Under the pieces are notes generated by a model. The model was not told the origin of the DNA. It ran no database searches and saw only the letters and a program-made list of their open reading frames with translations. From IMG/VR virus record IMGVR_UViG_3300049001_000044, positions 186,001 to 250,000 of that record: a stretch of DNA of 64,000 nucleotides. One strand, given 5' to 3'. Position 1 is the first letter of the stretch; every line of letters starts with the position of its first letter. This document shows, piece by piece, positions 2,672 through 52,837 of this stretch. The position numbers and the translations under genes are program-made.

Positions 2672-3295
2672 TTAAATCACTGCTGCGTTCTTCGCCACTG
2701 TGAGGATGGACTCAGGAGTCGCTTGCACGTTTAGGACGAGTAGCGTGGTGTTGTCAGCGAAGGAGAAGAGTGAGTGCTCTTTACTGGTGTTGATGAAGTG
2801 GGGGATGCCTTCTTCAAGATGAAGAGGTTTACCTTCGTGTAACCACACAACGTGGTTCCTCCTCCAATTGATAGGGACCATGATACGCATTGTCCCCGCA
2901 GGAAGTGCGAAACCATTGTCACGATGAGGAGGGAAGAATCCACCAGCGTCAAGACGAAGGAAGTGTGAGCGGCCCAAAAACCTGCCCCACATATCCAGGA
3001 AGCCGCCCAATCCTAATTCATCAACGATAGGTGTGCGTGTCTTGAAGCTAAACTCACCGAACTTGGTACCATTGAGTAGGTTGTACTCACGAAGAGAATC
3101 AAGGTCAGGGGTGCCAGAGTAATCACCATCCAACGACGTGACCGACAGCCCGTAGCGGTTAATGGGCTTACGTGGATTGTATTGCTTCCAATGAGGAGAG
3201 TTGGCCAGCACCTGCTTGATGTGGTGCATGTCAAAGGGCTGGCTTTTCATCTCGATTACGTCGCCAAAGTTGGCGACTAGGTCAGTGACAGTCAT
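2672..3295 (-). CDS. aspartyl/asparaginyl beta-hydroxylase-like 2OG-Fe(II) oxygenase
   Basis: FPPHRD motif, FINTSKEHS distal His, cupin-like pattern. Confidence 0.65.
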   Translation of the reverse strand: MTVTDLVANFGDVIEMKSQPFDMHHIKQVLANSPHWKQYNPRKPINRYGLSVTSLDGDYSGTPDLDSLREYNLLNGTKFGEFSFKTRTPIVDELGLGGFLDMWGRFLGRSHFLRLDAGGFFPPHRDNGFALPAGTMRIMVPINWRRNHVVWLHEGKPLHLEEGIPHFINTSKEHSLFSFADNTTLLVLNVQATPESILTVAKNAAVI

Positions 3296-3819
3296 TTGAT
3301 AGCGGTCAAGGCGTCCTTTGGATCAACGAGCACCAGGCGGTTCAGCGGAATCCGGCCCTCGGCGGTATCACGGCCGGAAGAGAAGAGCGATGATTCATTT
3401 CCGAAGCTACCGTCAGCAATGACTTTGAAGGTGCGGCCAGAAATGTGGACTTCGACATAGGTCTCTCGCTCGTCAAATATCTTCGCGTCAGATGGCATGA
3501 CATCTCCAATCACTACAACGGCACCACGTTGGAAGTATTGCGACGCGTGACCCGAATCGCTGTAGCAGCATCCGCCTTCCATCATGATGTACGCTTTGCC
3601 CTTCTCCACTCGCTTGCCCATCACAAACGCGTTATTTGCTTTTGCCCAAACGTACAACTTTTTCATAGCAGCTTGAGCTTGCGATTCACGCCATGGGTTA
3701 CTGCGATCGTCCTCTAGACCGCTCATGTGCTCCATGAATGCCTTGAGGTCAGCTTCATTGGAAATTTCTACGTGCTGTGCCGCGGCCTCACGCAGATTCA
3801 ACAGTTCTTTGATTAGCAT
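3292..3819 (-). CDS. hypothetical protein, possible head internal protein
   Basis: 175 aa; N-terminus MLIKELLNLRE resembles a capsid-targeting sequence. Confidence 0.65.
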   Translation of the reverse strand: MLIKELLNLREAAAQHVEISNEADLKAFMEHMSGLEDDRSNPWRESQAQAAMKKLYVWAKANNAFVMGKRVEKGKAYIMMEGGCCYSDSGHASQYFQRGAVVVIGDVMPSDAKIFDERETYVEVHISGRTFKVIADGSFGNESSLFSSGRDTAEGRIPLNRLVLVDPKDALTAIK

Positions 3820-3828
3820 CTTCTTTCC

Positions 3829-4260
3829 CTAGTATGGTAGAACGCAATATGCATTCACGTTATTTACATTCTCTGCCCACTCGCTAGTCAGTTGAAAACC
3901 GACCGACTCATAGGTCTTCCAGCTGTCTTTGCGAGGAAAGGACCAACAAAACTTACTCCCCTCACCCTGTCGGATGGTCGCGAAGAGTAGTTGTTTGGCA
4001 ATGCCTCTGCCTCGGTAGGAGGGGTTAACCCAAAGACCTCTACTACGATAGCTGCCGTCAGCACAAGGGTGACCACTGTTCACACCAACAATCTTTCCAT
4101 CTTGCATGAAAGCAAAGAATGTCGGCGAGACAAGTTGATTCTCTTGGTAGCCACCCAAGTACGTCATGCAGCTAATTGGTTCGATAGGATCCTTTCGATC
4201 AACCCACAGCTGTTCCTCCCAAATAGGGAGGATTTCAGCGTAGGTGATTTGGACTATCAC
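3829..4260 (-). CDS. GNAT acetyltransferase (TAG stop)
   Basis: LWVNPSYRGRGIAKQLL acetyl-CoA motif A. Confidence 0.8.
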   Translation of the reverse strand: MIVQITYAEILPIWEEQLWVDRKDPIEPISCMTYLGGYQENQLVSPTFFAFMQDGKIVGVNSGHPCADGSYRSRGLWVNPSYRGRGIAKQLLFATIRQGEGSKFCWSFPRKDSWKTYESVGFQLTSEWAENVNNVNAYCVLPY

Positions 4261-5654
4261 TTCTTAGCCTTCTTCGACTTCTGCGGTCTTTGCTTCTCTT
4301 CCAGATCATGCATGATCTTTGCAAGATCGGCAGCTGCTTTTGAACGAACAGTTGGGCTAATTGCATTCGCCTTGACCTTCTTCAGTCGGTCGACTTCAGC
4401 TTTCAGCTCGTCAGGAATTTGGACTTCAGTTGAAGCTGCGGGAGCTGCGCCTGCGTTACCAGACAAAATCTTAGCGACTTGGTCTGCGAAGTCATCACCT
4501 TTCGCTTTGATGTCTGCTGCGATCTCATCCGCAGATTTGTTCGCGACGTCTGCTGGCGGGGCAGCATTTGGATCTGCATTTGGATCTGGTTGAGCGTTAG
4601 GGTCAGCATCTTGATCGTCTTGATCGTCTGCCTGACCGCCTGCAAGACGTGTGAAGTTAGCATCAGCGTTCAACAGCTCAACGAGGTCATGATAGTGATG
4701 GTCAGCTTTGACTGGATCGCTGTAGAAGGCGTGGATGATAGCTGGGATCAACTTCTGGTTATCATGGATGCGAGGATCTTTAGTCAGGGCGGTGACTAGT
4801 TTGTTACGTAGCTCTTTCAATCCCTCAGGGGTGGTCGGCCAGCCTGAGCTGTCGCGGGAACCAGATACCCGGAAGAAAATCTTTCTTGCGTCATCTGCAA
4901 CAAGGCTAACAATCTTCATCTCACTAGCGGTGAGAGTGACTTTCTTAGGGGGCTGTTGCGTGCTATTAGCTGCATCGTCATTGTTACCGGGCACTGCGCT
5001 TGCTCCCTTGTCTCGTTCGTCTTGCTCAGCGCGGGCGTTGTTGATGACAGCGCGGACTGGGAATGCGGTGACGAACTTCTTGATGTTGAACTTTTCAAGA
5101 CGTTCCTCTCGATCGTCAAGCGCCCCAACACCTGCCCTTTGGATCGCATTCGCGTTGAGAGTTGCTACGTAGTACTTGTGGGAGATAACCGCTAGAAAAT
5201 CTTCACGAGCCTGTGTTAGGTCGTTTGCAGTACGGAGCTTCTCAGCGATAGAATGTGGGGCATTGAAGAGGACTGCGTATGGGCGCTTAGAGACAAGCGG
5301 TTTGTCCAGCGCTTTCAAGTCGAAGTCATTGCCGATCAGGAAGGCAACTGCATTATCCTGTTCGCCGTGAAGCGCTGGGAAGATGGCTTTAATCTGATCG
5401 TCAGTGAGTGCGTCGACGACTTTCTTTTCGCCGCCATTCGAAAGATACCGATCCTTGAGGTCAGCATCGTTGAGGAACATCACCACTCTGGTTGAGTCGC
5501 TTGGTACGGCAAAGATGCGACCAAGAACCTGCTCAGTGGCAGACTCACCACTTACTGCGTCAGGTTTTGCTTGGTCATCACCTTGCGGCCGCCCACCGCT
5601 CAACGTGTCAGCGTGGTTGTTGATACGGTTGATTAGTTCGAAGAGCTTTGCCAT
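4257..5654 (-). CDS. 465-aa hypothetical late/virion protein
   Basis: Late-type ATAAATA upstream; MAKLFEL N-terminus; DPNA low-complexity repeats. Confidence 0.7.
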   Translation of the reverse strand: MAKLFELINRINNHADTLSGGRPQGDDQAKPDAVSGESATEQVLGRIFAVPSDSTRVVMFLNDADLKDRYLSNGGEKKVVDALTDDQIKAIFPALHGEQDNAVAFLIGNDFDLKALDKPLVSKRPYAVLFNAPHSIAEKLRTANDLTQAREDFLAVISHKYYVATLNANAIQRAGVGALDDREERLEKFNIKKFVTAFPVRAVINNARAEQDERDKGASAVPGNNDDAANSTQQPPKKVTLTASEMKIVSLVADDARKIFFRVSGSRDSSGWPTTPEGLKELRNKLVTALTKDPRIHDNQKLIPAIIHAFYSDPVKADHHYHDLVELLNADANFTRLAGGQADDQDDQDADPNAQPDPNADPNAAPPADVANKSADEIAADIKAKGDDFADQVAKILSGNAGAAPAASTEVQIPDELKAEVDRLKKVKANAISPTVRSKAAADLAKIMHDLEEKQRPQKSKKAKK

Positions 5655-5685
5655 GGAATATAGGATCCAAAATGAATATGAATCC

Positions 5686-5692
5686 TATTTAT
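5686..5692 (-). promoter_or_regulatory. late promoter-like ATAAATA
   Basis: Resembles the T4 late consensus TATAAATA; recurs before structural genes. Confidence 0.5.
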
Positions 5693-5694
5693 CC

Positions 5695-5988
5695 TCAGCG
5701 CCGCTTCTTCTTTCTCTCTGCGGTTTCTTTGCTACCATCATAGAAGCTGGGATCCTTCTTAGCTACCCACTTCACGAAGGACTGGATGTGGTCATTCTCC
5801 AGCAACCTGTCGATCGTGTGGTAGTAGTGTAGGAGTTCCCGCTCAGTGAAGGTAGCGTGGATTTTGCGGTGGCAGATCTTATGCAACTCCACCAGTTCCT
5901 TTCCCTTGAAGGTTTTCGGAACCAGATGGTGAGCATCTACATTAATCTGCCCCAGTGGTCTTTTGCACAGCGGGCACTTTGTGTCCAT
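5695..5988 (-). CDS. HNH endonuclease-like protein
   Basis: CPLC...HHLVP...LHKICHRKIH. Confidence 0.75.
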   Translation of the reverse strand: MDTKCPLCKRPLGQINVDAHHLVPKTFKGKELVELHKICHRKIHATFTERELLHYYHTIDRLLENDHIQSFVKWVAKKDPSFYDGSKETAERKKKRR

Positions 5989-7767: not shown

Positions 7768-8061
7768 TTACTTCGTTTCTACTTTGTACTGCACATCACG
7801 CACCAACTTCCTTGCTGCGTCTTTTGGTCCCAGCCAAATGTTCACCTGCACATCGCCAGTAACCATGTTGTACGACTCGATAGAGTGCGCTAGATTTTCA
7901 GCAATGGACTTTGCCACTTCTTCCAGCACCTCATCGGCGTGTTCCTTCAGTTTCTCCTTGACAAGATCTTTCAAGTGAAGAGCAACTGCATCGCTCACCA
8001 GATTGGTTATGTCTTGGATCTTGCTTACTACCTTCATCCTTTCGTCAATTGGGTCTTGCAC
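7768..8061 (-). CDS. hypothetical protein
   Basis: 97-aa ORF with RBS. Confidence 0.6.
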   Translation of the reverse strand: MQDPIDERMKVVSKIQDITNLVSDAVALHLKDLVKEKLKEHADEVLEEVAKSIAENLAHSIESYNMVTGDVQVNIWLGPKDAARKLVRDVQYKVETK

Positions 8062-8511
8062 TTAGCTTCTCCTTCGGCCTCCACCAGCCATGATGTCTTT
8101 CATCATCTCAGGAGTGACTAACATATCGCCACCCTTGTTGTACGCCGGAGCTGTCATGAACTTTCGTTCTCTTGCCTTCAGCTCGCGTTCCAGCATCTCA
8201 GGGTTATCCTTGTACAACACACGAGGGTCATGCACCTTCGGTGCTTCCTTTGGAGTTGAGTTTGGCACGGACGGCGTTGGCATCAACGATAACTGTTTTG
8301 CCTTTGCCTCCTCTTGCGCAGAGTACGACAAGCTCGTTGGCCCTGTAACCACCACTCTTGATGGTCTCTTCGACGTGCTTGATTGCTTCTTGGACGTCGG
8401 CGTCACTCCGTGCTTTGCTAACCATGCCTCATACTCCTCTTGCTCTTTCTTCCAGCCAACTTTCTTGTTCTGTTTTTTCGCCGACTTGCTTCCAGCGTAA
8501 ATCAGTGCCAT
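8062..8511 (-). CDS. conserved phage hypothetical protein
   Basis: 149 aa, C-terminal APAYNKGG motif, promoter upstream. Confidence 0.7.
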   Translation of the reverse strand: MALIYAGSKSAKKQNKKVGWKKEQEEYEAWLAKHGVTPTSKKQSSTSKRPSRVVVTGPTSLSYSAQEEAKAKQLSLMPTPSVPNSTPKEAPKVHDPRVLYKDNPEMLERELKARERKFMTAPAYNKGGDMLVTPEMMKDIMAGGGRRRS

Positions 8512-8556
8512 CGTAAATCCTCAACTACCTTTCGTTAAGTTGCTGTATGAATTGAT

Positions 8557-8586
8557 ATTGTAGCTTGTAGCAAATCGGTATGAAAC
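8557..8586 (-). promoter_or_regulatory. early-type promoter GTTTCA-N18-TACAAT
   Basis: Repeated promoter motif. Confidence 0.55.
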
Positions 8587-8600
8587 TGGATATGACCTGG

Positions 8601-8685
8601 GACTTACTAGAGGTGCTCAGAGATGCGAGGGCGTTCAAGATATAGTTGCTAACACGTCTGTCGACGAGGTGCTCAGAGCACCTCC
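8601..8685. repeat. dispersed ~85-bp element, copy 2
   Basis: GACTTACTAGAGGTGCTCAGAGATG...GAGGTGCTCAGAGCACCTC. Confidence 0.75.
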
Positions 8686-8877
8686 GGTCCCAAGGCAGAA
8701 AAAAGGGTTCCATTTGGAACCCTTCAGAGAGTTGTTGATCTCTCGTCTTGTGTCGCTCTTTCGATTCGAGCGTTTGTCCTGTCGTTCTTGGTGCCTTCCA
8801 CCGGTCTTGCTACGGAGAATCTCGTTCACCATGGTAGCTCGTGGTTTTGGCACGACCATTTTCTTTGCCATGATCAT
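8635..8877 (-). CDS. small basic hypothetical protein
   Basis: ORF track; 3' end runs through a terminator-like hairpin and the repeat. Confidence 0.45.
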   Translation of the reverse strand: MIMAKKMVVPKPRATMVNEILRSKTGGRHQERQDKRSNRKSDTRREINNSLKGSKWNPFFCLGTGGALSTSSTDVLATIS

Positions 8878-8900
8878 GTCCTTAAGGATAGAGGTTGTAT

Positions 8901-9092
8901 TTATTTCTCTGTCATCGAATACTTGTACGAAGTGTAGTTGATAATTCGCCCAGTATCACAAGTCATTCTTAGATGCCTATCATTTACCTTTTCTAACTTA
9001 CCCCCGCATACTTCTTGCGGGGTGTCTTGATAATGGCGTTCGCCACAGGCAGCAAGTAAGGAAACTAAACTGACGATTACAATGGTCTTCAT
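8901..9092 (-). CDS. small lipoprotein
   Basis: Signal peptide with LAAC lipobox. Confidence 0.6.
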   Translation of the reverse strand: MKTIVIVSLVSLLAACGERHYQDTPQEVCGGKLEKVNDRHLRMTCDTGRIINYTSYKYSMTEK

Positions 9093-9111
9093 TTAAAGCT
9101 TTCAAATCTGG

Positions 9112-9186
9112 TGGTGGTTCCAGCGGGGATCGAACCCGCGACCTTAGGTTTTAGAGACCCGGCTCTGCCAACTGAGCTATGGAACC
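9112..9186 (-). tRNA. tRNA-Sup(CUA) amber suppressor 1
   Basis: Cloverleaf GGTTCCA/TGGAACC, loop CT-CTA-AA, A73, encoded CCA. Confidence 0.85.
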
Positions 9187-9264
9187 TGGTGGCGTGTATC
9201 GGACTCGAACCGATGACCAAGGAGTTTAGAGGTCCCTGCTCTACCAAACCTGAGCTAACACGCC
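9187..9264 (-). tRNA. tRNA-Sup(CUA) amber suppressor 2
   Basis: Cloverleaf GGCGTGT/ACACGCC, loop CT-CTA-AA, A73, encoded CCA. Confidence 0.85.
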
Positions 9265-9287
9265 GTTTTGTTGCTGTGCACAATGAA

Positions 9288-9317
9288 ATTATACTCAACA
9301 CAGCTTGAAGTAAAAAC
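9288..9317 (-). promoter_or_regulatory. early-type promoter GTTTTT-N18-TATAAT driving the suppressor tRNAs
   Basis: Repeated motif; a late-type ATAAATA also lies at 9328-9334. Confidence 0.7.
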
Positions 9318-9326
9318 TAGCAACCT

Positions 9327-9638
9327 TTATTTATCAGCGAAGTGCAGTTCGCTGGGGGATGCGAAGCGTCCTTGATCTGCCCGCCATGGAGTCGCTGTTT
9401 TCTCAGCTTCTCTCCATCCCACAGTCTTTACAATGTAGCAAGCATTACCTGCGTAGTTACTTTGAACATCTGTGATCTCATGGAGTTCAAGCGAGATAGT
9501 TCCTCGGTCCTTCAAGAATTTCTTTCTCAGTCTTGGGTCAGAAGGAATGTTGAACCGAACAGTCCTCCCAATGTTCTTTCGCATCTCTTCATCGTCATCC
9601 CCACCAGCTCTGTCGTCAAAGAATTCCCAAAGTTTCAT
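9327..9638 (-). CDS. hypothetical protein
   Basis: 103 aa, starts MKLWEFFD. Confidence 0.65.
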   Translation of the reverse strand: MKLWEFFDDRAGGDDDEEMRKNIGRTVRFNIPSDPRLRKKFLKDRGTISLELHEITDVQSNYAGNACYIVKTVGWREAEKTATPWRADQGRFASPSELHFADK

Positions 9639-9687
9639 CTCTTCTCCTATGGATTTAGGGAGCTTCGTTTGAAGCTCCCATCTCTAT

Positions 9688-9981
9688 TTACTGACTAGCC
9701 TCGTACTGTTCCTGTGCCTGCGCCTTCATGGAGATACGGCCATCGATCATGTACGTTGCCTGATTACGGAGACCGTCTCGTTCGCTGCGCAGCCTTTCTA
9801 CTTCTTTCCATGCTGGCCAGTAGGTGCCTTCACGGGTGCTAGATTTTGCGAATACTTTCTGTGCATCATTGAATTGCTTCCTTACGTCGCGGATTTTCTG
9901 CGAGAGGTCTTTGTAGTCTGCTTTCCACTGAGCGGCTGCGGCGATGTAGGTTTCACGGGAATTGAAGTTGAAGTAGGTCAT
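9688..9981 (-). CDS. coiled-coil hypothetical protein
   Basis: 97-aa ORF with GGAG RBS. Confidence 0.7.
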   Translation of the reverse strand: MTYFNFNSRETYIAAAAQWKADYKDLSQKIRDVRKQFNDAQKVFAKSSTREGTYWPAWKEVERLRSERDGLRNQATYMIDGRISMKAQAQEQYEASQ

Positions 9982-9996
9982 GTTTTGCTCCTTGGA

Positions 9997-10545
9997 TTAT
10001 TTGAGAAATTTCTTTGCTGCTTGAATGAGTCGCTTGGTTTTGATTTTGTAGCTCTGCGAATCCTTACCACCAAACATAGATGCGTTGGCGTTGATCTCGG
10101 CCCATGCAGTGAAGAAAAGGATGGGTGCGAGTGGGTGCTTGATCAGCTCGAGTAGTTCATCACCACGAGCAGTGTGAAAGTCCATGTCTCGACGAATGAG
10201 GTTGGTAGTGAAGAGGTCGTCGGGAAACAAATGACTGTACTGCTGAGCAGAGATGTTAGCATGATCTGGGAAGTGGCGCTTGCCATCTTCATCAATCGTC
10301 AACGTCAAGTGCTTGCCACAATCGTGATAGACGTGGTATGGTTGAAGCACCGAAGCTGGAGGAAGGCTAAACTTGGAGTAGATTTGTTGAAGCTCAGTTG
10401 GAGCTTCTCCTTTCTCAAGTTCATCGATCAGCTCTTTGTACTTCTCGTGCACAAGTTGGCCGTGTTGGAGCATGTTCAGGTTAGGAGCCTGAAGACAAGC
10501 TTCCATTGCGAGGTGGAGTTCTTCAAGGGAGTTTTCGTACTTCAT
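9997..10545 (-). CDS. HD-domain phosphohydrolase-like protein
   Basis: Start MKYENS; YHDCGK and HANIS motifs; ATGA-coupled to the upstream Pth gene. Confidence 0.65.
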   Translation of the reverse strand: MKYENSLEELHLAMEACLQAPNLNMLQHGQLVHEKYKELIDELEKGEAPTELQQIYSKFSLPPASVLQPYHVYHDCGKHLTLTIDEDGKRHFPDHANISAQQYSHLFPDDLFTTNLIRRDMDFHTARGDELLELIKHPLAPILFFTAWAEINANASMFGGKDSQSYKIKTKRLIQAAKKFLK

Positions 10546-10886
10546 GCTGCGTCTCCTTGCGTAGGCAGCTTCCAAAGCTGCAAGCCTTTCAGGAGATTGC
10601 GATTCTCTTCAGTGAGAATGCAAGCAATCGCAGTCAATCCCCAATCTTTGTACGGTTCGTGGAACTCGGCAGTTGGGATTCCATTCTCATTGAGCGTGGC
10701 GCGAAGCTGTTCCAACTTCTGCTTGTCTCGAATGGTGAGATGGATGTACGACGGATGATGGTCAGCAGGGCGACCAAAAGTGTATGCGTGTTCGACGGCG
10801 GCATGGCCAGCTTGAACAGCTTGTTGCGCGAGTGGGATGTCTCGGCGCGAGATGGTGTACAGGTAGGTTTTGGAAATCTACAACAT
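10542..10886 (-). CDS. Pth2-like peptidyl-tRNA hydrolase with in-frame TAG at codon 3
   Basis: GGAG RBS, then ATG TTG TAG ATT TCC AAA... open for 115 codons to TGA; translation has RRDIPLAQQAVQAGHAA and EPYKDWGLTAIA. Confidence 0.75.
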
Positions 10887-10919
10887 TTTTGTTTTCTCCG
10901 TTAGGTTTTAAAAGTCAGC

Positions 10920-11033
10920 GTTGGTGCGAAAATTCGCATCTAGCAGCGTGAGTGAACGTACAGGTTCCCGGTCCAGTCAAATGGGTTAAATTGGGATGTC
11001 GACGGCGCTAACCCATCAACATTTCGCACCAAC
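10920..11033 (-). other. structured 5' leader closed by a 12-bp stem
   Basis: GTTGGTGCGAAA/TTTCGCACCAAC inverted repeat; inner GATGGGTT/AACCCATT stem. Confidence 0.55.
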
Positions 11034-11050
11034 TATTTACTGACAGGAAT

Positions 11051-11080
11051 ATTTTATCACTTCTGATTCCTAATGAAAAC
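11051..11080 (-). promoter_or_regulatory. early-type promoter GTTTTC-N18-TAAAAT
   Basis: Repeated motif upstream of the Pth leader. Confidence 0.6.
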
Positions 11081-11111
11081 TTTTATTTTCGTCAGTTGTC
11101 AAAAGCCTCAG

Positions 11112-11408
11112 TTAAAAATCAAGTAACATGTTTTGGCGACGCTCCTCAAGAAGATCTAAGAGGACGTCGCCATGGCATTGCTTTGGGTAGCACCAACAAC
11201 CAAGTGTCTTGCCTTCTAACTCATGAAGGTCGGCGAGAAGATGTGGGCTGCTTAGTATGTGTTGTCGATACGCTTCGATCGCTTCCGATCTTGTGCGCTT
11301 TCCTTCTTCTACTGGATGAGGATTGCCCCACTTACTTGGCCTACCAATGTAGACGTCGTATGGAGCTCTCTTGAAGTGAACTAATCTGGGTCTGGGTCTT
11401 CGTCCCAT
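11112..11408 (-). CDS. DUF4326 domain protein
   Basis: YIGRPSKWGNP...GKTLGCWCYPKQCHGDVL. Confidence 0.85.
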   Translation of the reverse strand: MGRRPRPRLVHFKRAPYDVYIGRPSKWGNPHPVEEGKRTRSEAIEAYRQHILSSPHLLADLHELEGKTLGCWCYPKQCHGDVLLDLLEERRQNMLLDF

Positions 11409-11675
11409 TTCTTAGTCCTCTCAATCTCATCCAATAAGTGCTGGAAGATGTCGACGAAACGCCAGTCTATCCGATGCGCAAGTGACAAACCTCTTTCAGA
11501 GATTCGGCGAAGCACTTCTAGTTGATCGTTCCCGGCCATAGTACGCCTTGCTCTTTACCAGTATAGGTGATGTCGTACTTCCTACATGCTGGGCAGAGAG
11601 CGTAATTGCCAAACGCAACCGCGAAGTTCGTGCCCAACCATTTACAATCTCGGCAGAAGTACAAACTTCGGTAGG

Positions 11676-12026
11676 TCACCATGATATGCGAATGTAGCGG
11701 AAATAGGATGGTGGCATGTTCGCGACAGTGTCCTCGTCATCCATACAGCCCAGCATTCTTCTGCTTACTTCCTGTTTCTGTGTGACGAACTCTGTGCGAT
11801 AGCCGAATGACTTCAACCTCTCCAATACTTTCAACATGATGGGAGTTTCTTTCAGGACAGCAGAGTATCCTTCGCCTCGAACCATCAACTCGTCGTTGTA
11901 GATGTCAAATGAGGTCTTGCCTTCTTCAGCTAGCTTGCGGACTTGTGGGTCAATCCACTTGATGAGACGATCAGCGACCATGTCGGAGGTCTTGACCAGC
12001 TCTCTTGCTTCACTGGCCTTAATCAT
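11676..12026 (-). CDS. hypothetical protein
   Basis: Likely start MIKASEARELV within the tracked ORF. Confidence 0.65.
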   Translation of the reverse strand: MIKASEARELVKTSDMVADRLIKWIDPQVRKLAEEGKTSFDIYNDELMVRGEGYSAVLKETPIMLKVLERLKSFGYRTEFVTQKQEVSRRMLGCMDDEDTVANMPPSYFRYIRISW

Positions 12027-22854: not shown

Positions 22855-22931
22855 TGGTTGCGGATGGTTGGATTCGAACCAACGACGCACGGGTTATGAG
22901 CCCGCTCTTCTGACCACTGAATTACACCGCA
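22855..22931 (-). tRNA. initiator-type tRNA-fMet(CAU)
   Basis: GGG/CCC in the anticodon stem, loop CT-CAT-AA, CCA. Confidence 0.8.
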
Positions 22932-23895: not shown

Positions 23896-23983
23896 TGGTG
23901 CTGACGGTGAGATTTGAACTCACGTGGGGTTTCCCCTCTGGGTTACAAAGCCAGTGCAATCGGCCGGACTATGCGACGTCAGC
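23896..23983 (-). tRNA. tRNA-Thr(UGU) with a long variable arm
   Basis: GCTGACG acceptor, loop TT-TGT-AA, GGGG-AAA-CCCC variable arm, CCA. Confidence 0.75.
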
Positions 23984-24452: not shown

Positions 24453-24533
24453 TGGTGGGGAAGGAAGGTTTCGAACTTTCGACCTCTTCGATGTGCGCAC
24501 ATTCAAAGCGCTCTACCACTGAGCTACTCCCCC
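24453..24533 (-). tRNA. tRNA with an enlarged anticodon arm (13-nt loop); identity unclear
   Basis: Normal acceptor, D and T arms and CCA; loop AATGTGCGCACAT. Confidence 0.6.
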
Positions 24534-26103: not shown

Positions 26104-26180
26104 TGGTACCCACGGTGAGATTCGAACTCACATATCACAAGGATTAAGCTTGTTGCCGTTGCCAATTAGGCTACGTGGGC
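26104..26180 (-). tRNA. tRNA-Leu(UAA), short variable loop
   Basis: Loop CT-TAA-TC, A73, CCA. Confidence 0.8.
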
Positions 26181-26692
26181 AATGTTCTTCCACGCTTGAA
26201 TCCTTGGAACTGTTCGAATTGATCTGGTCTAATCAGCTTGTTGATTTTGCCGTCAGTTATCCAGAACTTGCCAAACTGCGGATTCTTGTCACCCAATCTT
26301 TTACCGACTTGGGCTTCGGAAACTTTCTTACGTTGCTCTTCAGTAAAGACATAGCCATGAACTGAATTTCTGATCTTGCTCTTGACCTCTTCGCTGTGGC
26401 TCTTGCCTTTGAAGTGTGGTCCACCTTCTCCTCCAACGCCAAGGTTGTAGGTATCAGATCGTTGAACAAAATCTTCAGTCACTAGCTCTTTCTCTTTGAG
26501 ATTCATTTCGTCCTCTGTGTCGAAGATGAAGAGAATCTCTTTCACGAAAGAGTCTTTACCGTATTTCTTGATCGCTGCATTCAGTGCTTTACCAGATCCA
26601 AAATACGAATCGTCAAGGTCAAGCGTCTGATGCTTACCAATGTAGAACTTACCGTTCGTAGTGTTGGTAATTTTGTAGATTGTGTAGAACAT
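26171..26692 (-). CDS. Seg-like GIY-YIG homing endonuclease with NUMOD3 motif
   Basis: TIYKITNTTNGKFYIGKH...YFGSG...E...YN; FKGKSHSEEVKSKI; start at 26692, TAG stop. Confidence 0.85.
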   Translation of the reverse strand: MFYTIYKITNTTNGKFYIGKHQTLDLDDSYFGSGKALNAAIKKYGKDSFVKEILFIFDTEDEMNLKEKELVTEDFVQRSDTYNLGVGGEGGPHFKGKSHSEEVKSKIRNSVHGYVFTEEQRKKVSEAQVGKRLGDKNPQFGKFWITDGKINKLIRPDQFEQFQGFKRGRTLPT

Positions 26693-26704
26693 AAAAGCAC
26701 TCAG

Positions 26705-34822: not shown

Positions 34823-36040
34823 TTATACGAACGACAGGTTAGCGACGTTGATACGACCGTAGTAGTCAGCCGAGTTACCCAGGGACGTCGAGGTCTGGGT
34901 GAAGGTTGCCTTACCGTAACGAGTCATCAGCGACACGTGTGGGTTGAAGGTGTTAGGGTCAACAACGACACCCGAAGACATCAGAGGGATGTATGGGCAG
35001 TAGAAGTAACCAGCGTCCAGTTCACCATTGCCGCCCTTGAAGCCGAGCAGGATTGGCTCAGTACCGGTTTCGTGGTAGATGTAGGTGTAAACCTTGATCG
35101 AACCATTCAGGGTACCAACCAGCTTGGTGTTGTTAGGACCTTCGAAGGAACCGGAAACAGCAGGTGCGAAGACCGACTTGGTTGCCGACTGGAGGATTGC
35201 TACGACCATTGGCGAAACAACGATCCAGTTTGCTTGTGCACGACGGGTCTTACGTGCGATTTCCATTGCGACCTTGTTGATCAGCACGCCGAGAACTGCG
35301 TGACGATCGCCGACGTAGTGAGGAACACCGGTGAAGGTACCTGCCATGTCGAACGATTCAACGGTACCAGCCAGAGCGATCAGGTCGTTGATGATTTCGT
35401 TGTCGATTTCGCCAACGATTGCTGCGGACAGCGAAGAAGTCAGTTCAGCTTCCATGTCCAGACCATGCGATGCCTTCAGGTCTTGCATGGATTCTGGCGT
35501 CCAGCGAGCTTGCAGCTTACGCGAGCCAGCGGTGACGGTCTGCTTCAGCAGTTCCAGGGTCATGGTACGACCACCGTATGCTTCGAAGTCGCCAGTTGCT
35601 GCTGCGACACCGGTCGAGGTTGCTGGGGATGGGCCGCCTGCTGGAGCTGCTGCGTCCGAGGTGGAGTAGAAGCGACGCATCTTCGAGTGGGTGTGTGCCC
35701 AGATCTCGTCGCCCGCGGTGATGTCGGTAGCTGGGTTACCAGTATTGACCGACTCAGCGAACAGGAAGCGCTGCGAGTAAACCAGACCAACTGGACCGCT
35801 CATTGGCTGAACGCCGACGAGTTCGGTAGCGATGGTCGAAGGGATGATGCGGCGAATCATTGGGATTGCGATCTTCTGGAAGTTCGCGATCGCGCCTGCG
35901 CCTTGGGTGCCGGCTTCAGCGGTTTCCTTCAGATATGCCATCTGGTTTTCCAGGACTGGCGCCAGGACTGCTTTCTTCTGGCTAGAGAGACCTTCAAGAA
36001 GGGTCTCTTTAGTTGCTGTCCAATTTTCAAAAAGTTCCAT
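34823..36040 (-). CDS. gp23: major capsid protein
   Basis: VGVQPMSGPVGL, A.SRKLQARWT.E, YCPYIPL and TRYG T4-gp23 motifs. Confidence 0.95.
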   Translation of the reverse strand: MELFENWTATKETLLEGLSSQKKAVLAPVLENQMAYLKETAEAGTQGAGAIANFQKIAIPMIRRIIPSTIATELVGVQPMSGPVGLVYSQRFLFAESVNTGNPATDITAGDEIWAHTHSKMRRFYSTSDAAAPAGGPSPATSTGVAAATGDFEAYGGRTMTLELLKQTVTAGSRKLQARWTPESMQDLKASHGLDMEAELTSSLSAAIVGEIDNEIINDLIALAGTVESFDMAGTFTGVPHYVGDRHAVLGVLINKVAMEIARKTRRAQANWIVVSPMVVAILQSATKSVFAPAVSGSFEGPNNTKLVGTLNGSIKVYTYIYHETGTEPILLGFKGGNGELDAGYFYCPYIPLMSSGVVVDPNTFNPHVSLMTRYGKATFTQTSTSLGNSADYYGRINVANLSFV

Positions 36041-40943: not shown

Positions 40944-43900
40944 CTATGTGTTTGTGCGTCCAGTTGTGAACTGGAACGCTGTTGGGATTTGGTTCATGTT
41001 GTTTGGCGGTGGTGCTGCTGTCGCCGAGGTATTCGCAGAAGGTTTCTGATCGACCAACGACTGAAGGAAAGCAACTGCCTGTGCCATGTTGGTTGCGATG
41101 CTTTGAAGCTGTGCAAGAGCTGCTTCATCCTTGACATCGAGAAGGTTCTCTCCATCCTGCGTGAGGGTATTTATACCTTTGGTCAGCGCGTCGGTAGCTG
41201 AATCCACCGTCTGAATTTGCTGAGTTGGAGGCGCAATCGGCTGCACTGAAGTGTTCAGTGGGGTTGCCATCGTAGAAGCAAATGGCGAGATCGAATCCAG
41301 CAGAGGAGTCGAAGTCGAAGCATCTGTTGCTGTCTTGATAGTCGTCGAGAGATCGCCCATCGTCGTCGCAAGAGGATTCAGTGAAGAGGTCGAAGTCATG
41401 GTTGTTGCCAAGGACTTCAACGCATCGCTTTGCTTGCCGGTTGCCTTCGCTTGGATTACACCTGCCTCTACGAAGACAGCCTTGATCGCGTCTGCGATTG
41501 CCGTTGCCAGCGTAGGAGTAGCTTGATTAATTCCATCGACGATAGGATTCGCCGGCTTGTCATCAGAGGTTGGCTTCGCAACAGTAGACTTGTCATCCTT
41601 CTGGGGATTGATCATCTGTCCAACGGCCTGGCCGAGCTGCGCAGGTGTCATGTCCTTCTTAGGAGATGCTTGCTGCGCATCTGGCTTTGATTGCGCTGGC
41701 GTAGGAGTTGGGGCAGGCGTAGAAGCTTGCTGCGCATCTGGCTTCTTGTCGCTAACAACTGCGTCAGCGATTGCTTCACCACCAGTCTTGCCTAGCCAGC
41801 TGCCAAGTGCACCGCCAACAGCACCACCAATAAGAGCGCCAACGCCAGGAATTGGGATCAATACCTGACCGATTGCTGCACCTGCGAGACTAGCCGCCAC
41901 ACCACCAGCCGCACCGGTAACTGCGCCAGTCTTCTTCACAGTGGCTTGCTTATCAGTAATCTCGCCCTTCTTACGCTGTTCTTCTGCATCGTCGATGTCG
42001 CCCCACGCTTGATACGCTGCGATGATACCAGCCAGTGGGCCAGCTGCCTTACCCAAAATACCAGCTCCACCCTTGATGAGGCTACCAGCCGCTGATGAAG
42101 CTCCACGAAGCGCACCAGGTGCCGCCTCAGCAACACCAGTTGCTGCACCTCGCACGGCGCCCACCGCAGTTCTACCAGCGTTCATCACGCTTCCAGCTGC
42201 ACCTTCAACTGCGCCGGCGACACGAGGTGCAGCACCACGTACGGCTCCCCATGTACTGCTTGCCGCACCACGAACAGCATTAGCCGCAGTGCTAGCACCA
42301 GTACGCGCAGCGTTGAGTCCGCCAGATCCAATGTTCTTCAGCGCCGACAACAGTCCGCCTGGACCACCCATCAGCAACGATGTGCGAGAAAGCTGGAATG
42401 CGAATGCGACAAGTGCAGCGGTGGAACCGACGATTGCACCAAGGAATGCGTTGTTGATAACACTAGAGACTTGGTTGATCGCCTGACCCAGCACAGCAAC
42501 GGACTCGTTACCTTTCGCTGCTTCGCTCGCCTTCTTCTGCTCGTCAGGATTTACCTGTGCTCCAGCTTCCTTCGCCATCTGGATCTGTTCACCAGATCGC
42601 TGAATTTGCTGCGTTTGGCCGCTAGGCTGAAGATCTTGGCGAAGCTCGTTGTAGATGTCGCCCATTGCGCCATTACCGCTAGCACCATATCCTTCATTCG
42701 TTCTCTTTTCAAACTCCTGGCCAATTTGGCCAGTCAGTTCGGTAAATCTTGCCTGCTCGTCCTTGCTTCTTCTACCCTTAGATGCGAGCCTGTAGACTTC
42801 CATCGCTTGGTCTGATCCCATGCCAGCGAGCATTGCCTGCTGCATAAGCTTGGCTGCATCACCAGTACGTTCAGCGAGACGACCTCTTTGCTGTTCCTGC
42901 TGAGCCTTTACCAGCTCTTGTGCTTGCTGAATTTCCAGACCTTGCGCAACGTACTTAGTACGCAGTTGCACGAGCTCTTGCGCGTACATGTTCCTACGCT
43001 GCGTGTCCATACCCAGCATGATGCCAAAGGCGCCATCGGATTGGAACAGAGTCTTGTTAAGCGCTGCAAATTCCTGCGCAGAAATCTTGACCATTCCAGA
43101 TACTTTCTGGAATTGATCCATCATGGTGTCAGCGTACTTGTTCAGCTCGCCTGGATCCCTGATGTTGATACCTGCAGAGATTGCCGATTCGACAGTTGGG
43201 CCGATAGTTTCGGCCGCCTGCTTCATCGTGTAACCATACTTCTGGAACGTCTTCTGCATCATGCCCATGGCGGCCTGGAACTTCTCAGGGCCATAGATCG
43301 CAAGCATCCGCTTGTTCTCATCCATCAACGCAACGGTCTCCTTGAAGGAGAGACCCAACGCTACAGATGCTTTGTTTACTTGCAGATAGCTGGCAGGGAT
43401 TTGGGCGATGTTGAAGTCAGAAATCTCTTCCCACATCTCCTTGATCTTACGAGCTGCGAACTTGAACGCCGCGGTCGAAGAGAGGAAGTCTGTCACCATC
43501 TTCTTGATGCTGTCCATCGCAGAGAACTGACCAGCTGCGTTGTTCATTGAGCCAATGAACCTACCTAGGGCAGTTTGGAACAGCTGAGTGTTGCGATCGA
43601 TGTTATGCGCAGTGTTACCGAACGTCGATTCAAGGTTTGCGATTTCCTGAGCAAGACCTTCCCAGTCAATGTTCTCGAGGTTACCACGCATCTGGCCATT
43701 TGCGTCAAGGACGTTATGGGCTTCGTTCTGTGGATGGAACAAACCGCGCTCTTGCAACATAGCTGCCATTCTAGCGACCGCATCACGGTTGATAGATGCA
43801 CCATCTTGACCCATCGCAGCTCTAGTTGCTTCTTCAGGAGATAGGTGATCACCCGGTGAGACGTTGAACTGACGTGCGTTGAAAAGGTCACCAAACGATT

Positions 43901-44636
43901 TGAATCCTGTCTGTGACAGCACTTCCTTCATCGACGATTCAACTTCACCAATCGTAGAGCGAAGACGCTTGAAGTCCTCAACACCTAGGTCAGTGCGAAG
44001 GTTACCCGTTGCCTTATCGAATACTTTCAGCTTGTCTTTAGTCGCTTTCGACAAATTCTGTAGACCACCGACAGCCTTACCCAACTCGTCAAAGTACGCA
44101 GCTCTTTCGAACTCTTTGAAGTTGTTGATGAGGGTGAGATGCTCAGCATGGAGTAGCGACTGAGCTTTGGTGTTCTTAGCCAATTCATCAGTGAACCTGC
44201 CCATGCCGGCAACGATCAAGGTTGCTTGGTTGTTCAGCGCTGCCGCGGACGTGCCGAATTTATCGATACGTTCGGTCATGTGATGCATAGAATCAGCACC
44301 TTCAGACCATGAAGTGCGGAGCGCTGCTAGATCCTCGTTGGCGTCAGCGACCTCATTCGATAGGTCGCCAGATACCCGCAAAAATCGCTTAGCCGCTTGG
44401 TCATATCCTTTCGCTGCGCGCTTTGCGCTTTTGAACGCTATAGTTCCTCTGCGCAGCGAGATATCATCATCGTCATCAAATAACGATGAGGCAGGTGTTT
44501 GTCTTGGTCGTCCGCTCGGAGTAGTCCTGTGGCCGAACGATTGCTGGCCACCCATCTGACCCAATGAACGGGTAAGCGAGGCAATATTTTGGTTGAGTTC
44601 TCTCAACGCGCGGAGGCTATCTTCTTCAATTCCCAT
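40944..44636 (-). CDS. tape-measure-like tail protein
   Basis: ~1230-aa helical, Ala/Gly-rich; likely start MGIEEDS; divergent from gp26; TAG stop. Confidence 0.7.
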   Translation of the reverse strand: MGIEEDSLRALRELNQNIASLTRSLGQMGGQQSFGHRTTPSGRPRQTPASSLFDDDDDISLRRGTIAFKSAKRAAKGYDQAAKRFLRVSGDLSNEVADANEDLAALRTSWSEGADSMHHMTERIDKFGTSAAALNNQATLIVAGMGRFTDELAKNTKAQSLLHAEHLTLINNFKEFERAAYFDELGKAVGGLQNLSKATKDKLKVFDKATGNLRTDLGVEDFKRLRSTIGEVESSMKEVLSQTGFKSFGDLFNARQFNVSPGDHLSPEEATRAAMGQDGASINRDAVARMAAMLQERGLFHPQNEAHNVLDANGQMRGNLENIDWEGLAQEIANLESTFGNTAHNIDRNTQLFQTALGRFIGSMNNAAGQFSAMDSIKKMVTDFLSSTAAFKFAARKIKEMWEEISDFNIAQIPASYLQVNKASVALGLSFKETVALMDENKRMLAIYGPEKFQAAMGMMQKTFQKYGYTMKQAAETIGPTVESAISAGINIRDPGELNKYADTMMDQFQKVSGMVKISAQEFAALNKTLFQSDGAFGIMLGMDTQRRNMYAQELVQLRTKYVAQGLEIQQAQELVKAQQEQQRGRLAERTGDAAKLMQQAMLAGMGSDQAMEVYRLASKGRRSKDEQARFTELTGQIGQEFEKRTNEGYGASGNGAMGDIYNELRQDLQPSGQTQQIQRSGEQIQMAKEAGAQVNPDEQKKASEAAKGNESVAVLGQAINQVSSVINNAFLGAIVGSTAALVAFAFQLSRTSLLMGGPGGLLSALKNIGSGGLNAARTGASTAANAVRGAASSTWGAVRGAAPRVAGAVEGAAGSVMNAGRTAVGAVRGAATGVAEAAPGALRGASSAAGSLIKGGAGILGKAAGPLAGIIAAYQAWGDIDDAEEQRKKGEITDKQATVKKTGAVTGAAGGVAASLAGAAIGQVLIPIPGVGALIGGAVGGALGSWLGKTGGEAIADAVVSDKKPDAQQASTPAPTPTPAQSKPDAQQASPKKDMTPAQLGQAVGQMINPQKDDKSTVAKPTSDDKPANPIVDGINQATPTLATAIADAIKAVFVEAGVIQAKATGKQSDALKSLATTMTSTSSLNPLATTMGDLSTTIKTATDASTSTPLLDSISPFASTMATPLNTSVQPIAPPTQQIQTVDSATDALTKGINTLTQDGENLLDVKDEAALAQLQSIATNMAQAVAFLQSLVDQKPSANTSATAAPPPNNMNQIPTAFQFTTGRTNT

Positions 44637-44667
44637 GGGAGGTGTTTCCTGAGTGACTGACGTACGG

Positions 44668-44692
44668 ATAAATAGATCTAGCAAGTATTTAT
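44668..44692. promoter_or_regulatory. divergent late promoter pair (ATAAATA on + at 44668, on - at 44692)
   Basis: Lies between the tape-measure-like and gp26-like genes. Confidence 0.55.
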
Positions 44693-44730
44693 GGTTGCAC
44701 CAGATTATAGAAAACACACATAGGAATCCC

Positions 44731-45519
44731 ATGTCAGAACAGAACAACCCACTACTGTCCAAAGTTAAACTCCCAGGACGAATCTTCCAACTCCCTTCGC
44801 TAGGCCTCTTCTACAAGAACGGTGAGCTGAGTGACAACGTTTCGAACGGTGAAGTCCACGTTCGACCTATGTCTGCACTCGCAGAAATCCACATGAAGAA
44901 CCCTGACCAGCTGTTCTCAGGTCAAGCGGTTGCAACGGTCTTTAGAGAGTGTGTCGAAGGCGTAGAGAAACCAACTGAACTGCTGGCCAAAGACGTCGAT
45001 GCGATCATGATGTTCCTCCGCACTGTTACGTATGGTCCTGGCTATGAGTTCGCTGCAAAGCACTACTGCGAGAATTCCAAAGATCACACCTACATCGCTG
45101 ACGTGGATCAGTTCATTGCATCAACCGTTGCGATCGATCCTACCGTCGTAGACAAGCTCTACACCGTCGAGGTACCAAATGGCCAAGTCGTCAAGATGCA
45201 GCCATCCCGTTATGCAGACGTTGTCGCTCTACTGAAAGCAAACCAAGGCAAGGACGAGATCACTGTTGAGGATGCGAAAGCTAACCTCATGATGATGCTG
45301 AACTCGGTCGTTACCGAAGTCGATGGCATCACCGACAAGAAGATGATCGATGAATGGCTGCGTCAGATCCCAACCACCTACGTCTCGCTCATCGCAAGCA
45401 AGATCGAAGGCATCAACAACTGGGGTCCTACGATGAGATGGAAAGGGAAGTGCCGTGATTGCAATGGCGACTTCGAAGTTGAACTGCCAATCAACCCAGT
45501 GTCTTTTTTCACCGAATGA
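44731..45519 (+). CDS. gp26: baseplate hub subunit (gp26-like)
   Basis: LPSLGLFY...VRPMSA..E...D.DAI...LR..TYG...C..C...PINP..FF. Confidence 0.8.
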   Translation: MSEQNNPLLSKVKLPGRIFQLPSLGLFYKNGELSDNVSNGEVHVRPMSALAEIHMKNPDQLFSGQAVATVFRECVEGVEKPTELLAKDVDAIMMFLRTVTYGPGYEFAAKHYCENSKDHTYIADVDQFIASTVAIDPTVVDKLYTVEVPNGQVVKMQPSRYADVVALLKANQGKDEITVEDAKANLMMMLNSVVTEVDGITDKKMIDEWLRQIPTTYVSLIASKIEGINNWGPTMRWKGKCRDCNGDFEVELPINPVSFFTE

Positions 45520-51730: not shown

Positions 51731-52837
51731 TTACACGATCCTAGTGTAGTAGTTACTCATGTCTTCTTTGGAGATAAATGACTTACCGTAGCGAGTCATT
51801 AAAGTGATCTGTGGTTCGAACGTATTAGGATCGATCACTACACCTGAAGACATTAATGGGACGTATGGGTTGAACACCAGTCCAGCATCAACCTCGTCAT
51901 TGAACATTCCGCCGCCCTTGTATCCAATCACTGCCTTACCATCTAGCGCCAGCGGGGTTAAGAAGACGCTCATGTTATTAAGCACGCCAACCTTCTTGAA
52001 ACTCCAATCATTGCCTCCGCCCTGCACTGAAACAAAGTTTGACTTTGGATCCATCTGCAGTTCAAGCAGGGAGTCGACGTTGACAATAACGAAGCGAGCA
52101 GCACCACGGCGAGTGTTTCTTGCCATATCATTTGATGCCCTGTTGATGGTTAGGGCAAGGGTGGCGCCATCTTCCTGTTTCACTTCCTTAGCAACATCGC
52201 ACATGTCGGTGAAGAATTCATTATCGATCTCCGCTGCGATTTGCTTCGCGAGAATAGAGTGGAACTCGTTGACGGCGTCAATATGGATTGCTGCCAGATC
52301 CTGCACTGCCTCAGTGGTAAATCGAGCTTGTAGACGACGCGTACCAGCGGTTGCTGTTTGCTTCACGATCTGTAGTACCATGCGCTTGCCTTCAACATCG
52401 ACATGATCCACAGCTGTGAAACGAAGGAAGTAAGACAGGCCAACTGGACCTTCCATCGGTTGAATACCGACGAAGTTGCCAACTGCGCTCATCACGAAGA
52501 TGTCTCTAATCAGTGAGAGATAGTCTACGCGAGACATTTTGCCCATCACGTTTCCATCCATTCGCGAATATCCATCTGCGTTCTTCAACAACTGCAGAAT
52601 GATTTCTTGCTTGTGGGCGGGGACAGTAGCGAGGAGGGTCTTGTAAAGTGCAGCGGTTTTCTGTTCTTCGGTCTTACCGAAGATGTGCTTCACGCCTTGA
52701 GCAATTTGGGTAAGACCAACCTTTGGGACGTGGAGCTTACCACCAGGCTTAGCCGACTCAGCAAGGGCCTTCGTAATAGGGCTAAACAAAGTGCCAAAAC
52801 CCATCCTTATTTGGATGAGACCTTCTTTAAGATTCAT
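51731..52837 (-). CDS. second gp23/gp24-family capsid protein
   Basis: VGIQPMEGPVGL, AGTRRLQARFT and PYVPLMSSGVVIDPNTF shared with gp23. Confidence 0.8.
   Translation of the reverse strand: MNLKEGLIQIRMGFGTLFSPITKALAESAKPGGKLHVPKVGLTQIAQGVKHIFGKTEEQKTAALYKTLLATVPAHKQEIILQLLKNADGYSRMDGNVMGKMSRVDYLSLIRDIFVMSAVGNFVGIQPMEGPVGLSYFLRFTAVDHVDVEGKRMVLQIVKQTATAGTRRLQARFTTEAVQDLAAIHIDAVNEFHSILAKQIAAEIDNEFFTDMCDVAKEVKQEDGATLALTINRASNDMARNTRRGAARFVIVNVDSLLELQMDPKSNFVSVQGGGNDWSFKKVGVLNNMSVFLTPLALDGKAVIGYKGGGMFNDEVDAGLVFNPYVPLMSSGVVIDPNTFEPQITLMTRYGKSFISKEDMSNYYTRIV

Follow-up and report, generated by a model that had tools for sequence, protein, structure and literature searches.

The window, a 64,000-nucleotide stretch of DNA covering bases 186001-250000 of a 343,229-bp virus record, contains 26 tRNA genes according to ARAGORN, two of which carry the anticodon CUA and lie directly next to each other on the minus strand (tRNA A and tRNA B, Table 1). 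The second tRNA starts at the base following the encoded CCA of the first, and the two genes are only 69% identical to each other. Both score well above the gathering score of 29 bits of the Rfam tRNA model RF00005, and in both the 7-nt anticodon loop has U33 and a purine at position 37, as required for an amber suppressor tRNA. The label tRNA-Pyl that ARAGORN assigns to them is only its name for a CUA anticodon. A tRNA-Pyl has a 3-nt variable loop, a short D-loop without G18G19, a 6-bp anticodon stem, and one nucleotide between the acceptor and D stems, whereas the two genes have D-loops of 8 and 10 nt containing GG, variable loops of 5 nt, T-loops reading TTCGA, and two nucleotides (U8, A9) after the acceptor stem. 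The pair is preceded on the same strand by two small ORFs without family hits and by a gene for a stand-alone protein with a predicted HD domain, which ends 733 nt upstream of the tRNAs.

Table 1. Features at and around the CUA tRNA pair and TAG-terminated genes discussed in the text (window coordinates)
Feature	Coordinates	Strand	Properties
tRNA A (CUA)	9187-9264	-	78 nt; G1-C72, A73, encoded CCA; loop CUCUAAA; 10-nt D-loop; C31/C39 mismatch; Rfam 56.4 bits
tRNA B (CUA)	9112-9186	-	75 nt; G1-C72, A73, encoded CCA; loop CUCUAAA; lacks nucleotide 26; C27/A43 mismatch; Rfam 58.2 bits
Sigma70-like promoter motif	9288-9318	-	AGTTTTT-N17-TATAAT; -10 element ends 23 nt before tRNA A
Late-like motif	9328-9334	-	ATAAATA, similar to the T4 late promoter; overlaps the stop codon of the upstream ORF; promoter function inferred
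Small ORF	9327-9638	-	no family hits
Small ORF	9688-9981	-	no family hits
Predicted HD-domain gene	9997-10575	-	phrog_14850 (1.9e-57; 182-192 aa); no Pfam or NCBIfam hit; no in-frame TAG
GNAT acetyltransferase gene	3829-4260	-	ends in TAG; next ORF (3292-3819) in the same frame
Tail protein gene	40944-44762	-	1272 aa; ends in TAG; readthrough would add 2 residues before a TGA

The observation made in the first-pass annotation, two tandem and sequence-distinct amber suppressor tRNAs in a genome that is not recoded, is confirmed. The anticodon loops, G1-C72, A73, and CCA ends described there were all found, and the portal protein and the gp23-type capsid protein are full length in table 11, in agreement with the statement that core genes are intact in the standard code. 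However, the claim that each tRNA has its own early and late promoter motifs is not supported, because the absence of any spacer leaves no room for a separate promoter in front of tRNA B. The two genes therefore form one transcription unit. Upstream of tRNA A, a single copy of a sigma70-like promoter was identified, belonging to a motif class (AGTTTT-N16-19-TAYAAT) that occurs 31 times in the genome, always on the minus strand, which carries 420 of the 468 ORFs, against 0.15 copies expected in shuffled sequences. Other copies precede the tRNA-Val, Pro, Arg, and His clusters, so that the pair is wired like the other tRNA genes of the phage. The ATAAATA motif is enriched about 10-fold upstream of ORFs, and 39 of its 62 copies lie within 60 nt upstream of an ORF start.

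The genome has direct terminal repeats, a G+C content of 50.5%, and 52 tRNA genes covering all 20 amino acids. It encodes a T4-type portal protein and a gp23-type capsid protein, and its nearest cultured relatives are Ralstonia phage RsoM2USA (capsid 64% identical), Xanthomonas phage XacN1 (54%), and the Stenotrophomonas phages RAS14 and CM1. The sequence was found only in DNA sequencing runs from a soil metagenome and in no RNA run, and a megablast search with positions 8000-12000 against the phage collection, from which records of this genome or of close kin may be missing, returned no match.

Suppressor tRNAs are strongly associated with phages that have reassigned a stop codon (bioRxiv 10.1101/2021.08.26.457843), and TAG is a rare stop in this genome, ending 5% of ORFs. 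Reassignment of TAG to an amino acid (code 15), at least in late genes, was considered. A genome-wide count of stop codons, which had been named beforehand as a check, was obtained with a simple codon-usage gene caller and yielded TAA 261, TGA 183, and TAG 24 for 468 ORFs. Reading TAG as sense lengthened ORFs no more than reading TAA as sense did. In addition, 204 stop-free tblastn alignments of RsoM2USA ORFs to this genome, covering 47,507 residues, contained no in-frame TAG once shadow frames were removed. Capsid, portal, and tail genes are intact. No intact release factor was found but only an ORF with an RF-1 domain whose GGQ motif is replaced, and searches for GlxRS, class II LysRS, TilS, and PTH2 in this genome were negative, while a tRNA nucleotidyltransferase head is present elsewhere in the genome. 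Code 15 is therefore refuted here for all practical purposes.

The four TAG-terminated ORFs listed in the first-pass annotation (3829, 26171, 29914, 40944) are the same four found in the window by the present ORF screen. Of the 24 TAG-ended ORFs in the genome, 23 have non-coding continuations, and only the GNAT gene is followed by a coding-like stretch in the same frame. As its junction, TAG-GGAAAGAAG-ATG, looks like an ordinary stop-RBS-start and the GNAT domain (Pfam) is complete, a readthrough fusion is possible but unproven. The ORF at 26171 as listed runs over tRNA genes, and only its 3' part is a real gene, encoding a homing endonuclease whose stop lies inside the tRNA-Leu(UAA) gene. The ORF at 29914 encodes a DNA-binding protein that matches only the first half of the phrog_624 profile, but no continuation follows its TAG. 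In this genome, no gene that needs UAG suppression was found.

CUA tRNAs have already been reported for relatives of this phage. Two suppressor genes per terminal repeat are described for XacN1, where in-silico readthrough of the 18 TAG stops found nothing (PMC5852040), and one is described for RsoM2USA (PMC8504454); both were confirmed in the respective sequences, and no target was found in either paper. These phages share with the phage described here the CUCUAAA loop and a standard-code genome with few TAG stops, and the XacN1 genes also form a tandem pair. However, the XacN1 pair shares one body and differs in the acceptor stem and in the discriminator base (A73 and G73), whereas here the bodies differ and both tRNAs have A73. 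Furthermore, the gene for the HD-domain protein lies far from the tRNAs in these two phages, namely 12 kb away in RsoM2USA and outside the terminal repeat in XacN1. A DNA pattern for CUA tRNAs hit at least 119 stretches in IMG/VR, many of them on contigs of 300-600 kb, and 14 or more of the first 80 hold two CUA tRNAs. A crude coding-density test flagged 6 of 73 such loci as possibly recoded, and the other 67 showed no sign of recoding.

A comparison of the proteins of this phage with the loci retrieved through the tRNA pattern by tblastn revealed that one gene, the predicted HD-domain gene at 9997-10575 (192 aa), recurs next to CUA tRNAs in unrelated contigs. In total, 224 metagenomic homologues are 50-70% identical to the protein. 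In a search in the opposite direction, 56 viral loci were fetched from IMG/VR through homology to this protein alone. Of these, 50 hold some tRNA within 8 kb, and 41 hold at least one CUA tRNA, always on the strand of the gene and mostly at a distance of 0.5-3.5 kb. CUA is the commonest anticodon at these loci (49 of about 430 tRNAs), and in several loci it is the only tRNA present. After de-replication at 80% identity, 26 of 38 clusters hold a CUA tRNA, which is the nearest tRNA in 17 clusters, while the next commonest anticodon, CAU, occurs in 14 clusters; this locus sample is limited and not fully corrected for phylogeny. Three further near-complete genomes without a CUA tRNA nearby have one elsewhere. 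The association is one-sided, as only 10 of 119 loci fetched through the CUA-tRNA pattern hold the HD-domain gene, and most phage suppressor tRNAs thus have no adjacent gene of this kind. The gene follows the tRNA, not the other way round. With both parts on the same strand within 8 kb, the locus of this phage belongs to the module of HD-domain gene and CUA tRNA as defined here.

In 15 of the 56 loci, falling into six of the 38 clusters, the homologue of the HD-domain gene contains exactly one in-frame stop codon, and in all 15 cases this is TAG. The stops fall at alignment columns 58, 69, and 148, which correspond to E47, T50, and F112 of the protein of this phage and are loops or helix ends of the predicted structure in variable columns, plus one at codon 4. 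All conserved motifs are intact downstream of the TAG. Eight of the loci form one GAP32-like cluster, of which one lies in the GAP32 record itself and three others are on contigs matching CBB, Serratia phage BF, and Yersinia phage fHe-Yen9-04. All eight retain GGA-TAG-GGC while dS reaches 0.65 upstream and 1.08 downstream, and dN/dS is 0.079 upstream and 0.075 downstream of the TAG. In the RefSeq annotation of GAP32, the gene is split into the fragments GAP32_398, 398A, and 399, described as hypothetical, with a Sup-tRNA 2.3 kb downstream, which points to an annotation error. The genome search of GAP32 likewise reports one TAG inside the match to the gene. Across the whole GAP32 genome (533 ORFs, 17 ending in TAG), it is the only TAG-interrupted gene detected by the screen; a second candidate (285373) consists of two full-length families that happen to share a frame and is not a split gene. 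One TAG-bearing gene of the family (viral locus L203) has no detectable CUA tRNA in its 94%-complete record. In XacN1 (M-K-TAG) as well as in RsoM2USA and locus L193 (M-Y-A-TAG), a TAG is located close to the 5' end of the gene, which may be a gate or may simply lie upstream of the true start.

The protein encoded by the partner gene was modeled with AlphaFold2 with high confidence (pLDDT 96). The best structural matches of the model are the C-terminal HD part of the CC-adding enzyme of A. aeolicus (PDB 3WFO-3WFS; TM-score by query 0.62-0.65), other CC- and A-adding enzymes, and CCA tRNA nucleotidyltransferase clusters in the ESM Atlas (0.70-0.78), and thus the C-terminal part of class II tRNA nucleotidyltransferases. 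The residues H28, H74-D75, H95, D120, and H124 are invariant in the family, in agreement with the H...HD...H...D metal ligands of HD phosphohydrolases, although the HD model of Pfam does not hit the protein. In contrast to the HD domain of bacterial CCA-adding enzymes such as E. coli Cca, the predicted protein stands alone at 180 aa and has no nucleotidyltransferase head. In XacN1 and RAS14, the domain is fused to a further C-terminal region, which in XacN1 scores as a PTH2 peptidyl-tRNA hydrolase domain (PF01981, 25.3 bits against a cut-off of 23), while the RAS14 ORF looks like the same kind of fusion by eye. An enzyme acting on tRNA 3' ends or in tRNA recycling is inferred from the fold, this domain fusion, and the surroundings of the gene.

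The interpretation given in the first-pass annotation, targeted or timed readthrough rather than reassignment to code 15, is partly supported. Code 15 can be dismissed, but targeted readthrough is supported only in kind, because the specific target is found in other phages and not in this genome. The proposed charging with Lys or Gln rested on the finding that many G1-C72/A73 amber suppressors are charged with these amino acids in E. coli. Scoring of the two tRNA bodies with position-specific profiles built from 315 phage tRNAs, which had a leave-one-out accuracy of only 67%, gave values near zero (tRNA B weakly Lys, tRNA A weakly Met), and nearest-neighbor identity within the genome was equally uninformative.

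With moderate confidence, the two genes are interpreted as probably functional amber suppressor tRNAs in a standard-code jumbo phage. In this view, they are transcribed as one dimeric precursor from the sigma70-like promoter of the phage, possibly also from the late-type motif further upstream. RNase P cleavage at the 5' end of tRNA B would also create the CCA end of tRNA A, and charging would depend on host synthetases. They would belong to a conserved two-part module consisting of one or two CUA tRNA genes and the gene for the predicted HD domain. In several other lineages, the UAG lies in a surface loop of this protein, so that it would only be made when the suppressor works, which would represent gating of a single gene and not genome-wide recoding. 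As the HD-domain gene of this phage has no TAG, this gate cannot operate here, and the pair can only act on the roughly 24 TAG-ended phage genes, most of which would gain short extensions, and on host UAG stops. Cooperation of the tRNAs with the predicted HD enzyme on tRNA 3' ends or in tRNA recycling, readthrough of host stops, and mutational buffering are all possible benefits, of which the first is favored. The anatomy of the tRNAs, the promoter class, the absence of recoding, the linkage to the HD-domain gene, and the TAG-only in-frame stops under purifying selection in relatives are directly supported by the analyses, whereas suppression and aminoacylation in vivo, the timing of expression, the amino acid carried, the activity of the HD protein on tRNA ends, and the benefit in this phage are inferred. 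The interrupted genes with low dN/dS on both sides of the TAG are strong indirect evidence that phage CUA tRNAs of this kind suppress UAG in vivo, and such tRNAs very probably gate this one gene as their target in those lineages.

Alternatively, the tRNAs could act mainly on the host, where general UAG readthrough, which the first-pass annotation had also raised as a possible perturbation of host TAG-terminated genes, would extend proteins, load ribosome-rescue systems, and help takeover or counter-defense, while the phage protects itself by avoiding TAG stops. This is in line with TAG being 7.6 times rarer than TGA as a stop in this genome and making up only 3% of stops in GAP32 and in XacN1 (PMC5852040), with the promoter class shared with other tRNA clusters, and with the absence of a detected phage target in this genome. 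However, it explains neither the linkage to the HD-domain gene nor the repeated TAG inside it, and TAG-ended phage genes show no excess of close back-up stops, with a median extension of 19.5 codons against 22 for TAA and 35 for TGA. This explanation is considered unlikely as the main role. A buffer against nonsense mutations or an early step toward recoding without a dedicated target, based on a rare stop codon and an acquired suppressor as proposed by Borges et al. (bioRxiv 10.1101/2021.08.26.457843), is supported by the rarity of TAG and by the lack of signs of recoding at most sampled CUA-tRNA loci. It appears less likely still, because the genome does not have the low G+C content from which the model starts, the in-frame TAG in GAP32 is confined to one gene family, and TAG arose at three or more sites of this same gene.

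It is very unlikely that the tRNAs do not work in decoding but serve as decoys or substrates for host tRNA-targeting defenses, or are decaying copies. Such a role could be suggested by the mismatch in each anticodon stem, the bodies that fit no isotype clearly, and the resemblance of the partner protein to a tRNA-end repair enzyme. However, anticodon-stem mismatches are not significantly commoner in CUA tRNAs (30%) than in other phage tRNAs (23%, p = 0.10), the scores are canonical, and the TAG-interrupted genes under purifying selection argue that homologous modules decode UAG. In addition, 124 of 129 distinct phage CUA tRNAs collected here have the loop CUCUAAA, which is identical to that of E. 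coli supF, and A36-A37-A38 is the MiaA determinant that favors efficient reading of UAG. While supF is a type II tRNA-Tyr mutant selected in the laboratory, the tRNAs described here are natural type I tRNAs of unclear isotype, conserved across wild phages. Their head-to-tail arrangement without spacer resembles the dimeric tRNA precursors of phage T4, which are processed by RNase P.

Suppressor tRNAs in phages that do not use an alternative code have been noted for years, for example in XacN1, RsoM2USA, GAP32, DLP5, and many metagenomic contigs, without any known target. The linkage to one conserved gene family with a conserved in-frame UAG provides a first concrete candidate target, which occurs on contigs matching cultured phages of enterobacteria and is therefore accessible to genetics and proteomics. 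Targeted literature searches found no report on this linkage or on the interrupted gene. In the recoded Lak, crAss-like, Jade, and Agate phages, a phage-encoded suppressor tRNA also changes how a stop codon is read during infection and thereby gates genes holding that codon (bioRxiv 10.1101/2021.08.26.457843). There, many late and lysis genes carry the codon and release factors or synthetases are often co-encoded, whereas here and in GAP32 at most one gene carries it and the partner is a predicted HD domain of the CCA-adding-enzyme type. In prfB, encoding RF2, an in-frame stop codon likewise ties the output of a translation-related gene to the efficiency of decoding, but this involves a +1 frameshift at UGA and senses the release-factor level, while a UAG would sense suppressor activity, and any feedback is hypothetical.

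Tentatively, many standard-code jumbo phages may carry a dedicated one-gene code switch, in which an amber suppressor tRNA, often a pair with different discriminator bases, is coupled to a stand-alone HD enzyme whose reading frame repeatedly acquires a UAG in a surface loop. The output of the enzyme would then be a read-out of suppressor activity, as a timer or a feedback loop, while the enzyme would act on tRNA 3' ends or on peptidyl-tRNA produced by readthrough. The phage described here would be a member in which the gate codon is absent or lost but the pairing is kept. Such a pattern may show how genome-wide recoding begins from a single gated gene, the tRNAs would be a source of natural, host-charged amber suppressors, and the gene would offer naturally permissive UAG insertion sites. 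Where two CUA tRNAs accompany the gene, their discriminator bases usually differ, with A73 and G73 occurring together in XacN1 and in the viral loci L164, L165, L166, L213, and L215, and T and G in L168 and L211, which suggests charging by two different synthetases.

An open reading frame of 225 aa with an RF-1 (release-factor GGQ) domain is encoded outside the window. In this ORF the GGQ motif is replaced, with 'SGGSG-W' aligning to 'SGAGGQH' of RF1, and codon-recognition domains are absent. It is a possible catalytically dead release-factor or ArfB-like protein in a phage that carries suppressors. A further ORF outside the window, of roughly 190 aa, ends in three consecutive amber codons (TAG TAG TAG), which are followed by a terminator-like hairpin. 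By chance, two extra TAGs would occur in about 0.006 of 24 genes.

The HD-family protein is fused to a further C-terminal region in XacN1 (locus L241) and RAS14 (locus L242), and in XacN1 this region scores as a PTH2 peptidyl-tRNA hydrolase domain. In addition, an ATG-AAG-TAG lies in frame just upstream of the usual start in XacN1. In another viral locus, L203 (IMGVR_UViG_3300035698_035310), the HD gene has an in-frame TAG at codon 109, although no CUA tRNA was found, either by ARAGORN within 8 kb or by a loop pattern anywhere in this 94%-complete record. In RsoM2USA, a tRNA-like sequence with a CAU anticodon and an encoded CCA, which was not called by ARAGORN, was seen in locus L016 about 50 nt upstream of the CUA tRNA of this phage, for which the absence of a tRNA-Ile has been reported (PMC8504454).

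Among the tRNA genes of the window, a homing-endonuclease gene (phrog_314) was identified, the TAG stop of which lies inside the 5' end of the tRNA-Leu(UAA) gene. The longer ORF as listed, which extends to 26890, runs across tRNA-Met and is not real at its 5' end. A late-like ATAAATA motif is located only about 6 nt upstream of tRNA-Arg(UCU), and some tRNAs may therefore be driven by late promoters. Rfam calls one tRNA (52.5 bits) that is not reported by ARAGORN, whereas ARAGORN also reports an unusually long 'tRNA-Thr(UGU)' of 88 nt and a short 'tRNA-Ser(UGA)' of 81 nt.

A second ORF related to gp23 (Pfam Gp23, 3e-50) lies about 16 kb from the major capsid gene and is probably the vertex-protein paralogue, like gp24. 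Finally, a small ORF starting 20 nt after tRNA B encodes a signal peptide with a lipobox-like L-A-A-C and is, accordingly, a putative lipoprotein.

Locations of the additional features in the phage genome, the window and other phages
Sequence	Position	Strand	Feature
Genome, outside the window	3696-4373 (locus L039, 1117-1794)	minus	ORF with RF-1 domain
Genome, outside the window	5275-5847	minus	ORF ending in TAG TAG TAG
Window	about 9092 downwards	minus	Putative lipoprotein ORF
Window	12477-12471	minus	ATAAATA late-like motif
Window	12464		tRNA-Arg(UCU)
Window	22859-22930	minus	tRNA called by Rfam only
Window	23896-23983		'tRNA-Thr(UGU)'
Window	24453-24533		'tRNA-Ser(UGA)'
Window	26104-26180	minus	tRNA-Leu(UAA) gene
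Window	26171-26701	minus	Homing-endonuclease gene
Window	34823-36040		Major capsid gene
Window	51731-52837	minus	Second gp23-related ORF
XacN1 (locus L241)	243732-244595		HD-family protein with C-terminal fusion
RsoM2USA (locus L016)	about 55870-55950	minus	tRNA-like sequence, anticodon CAU
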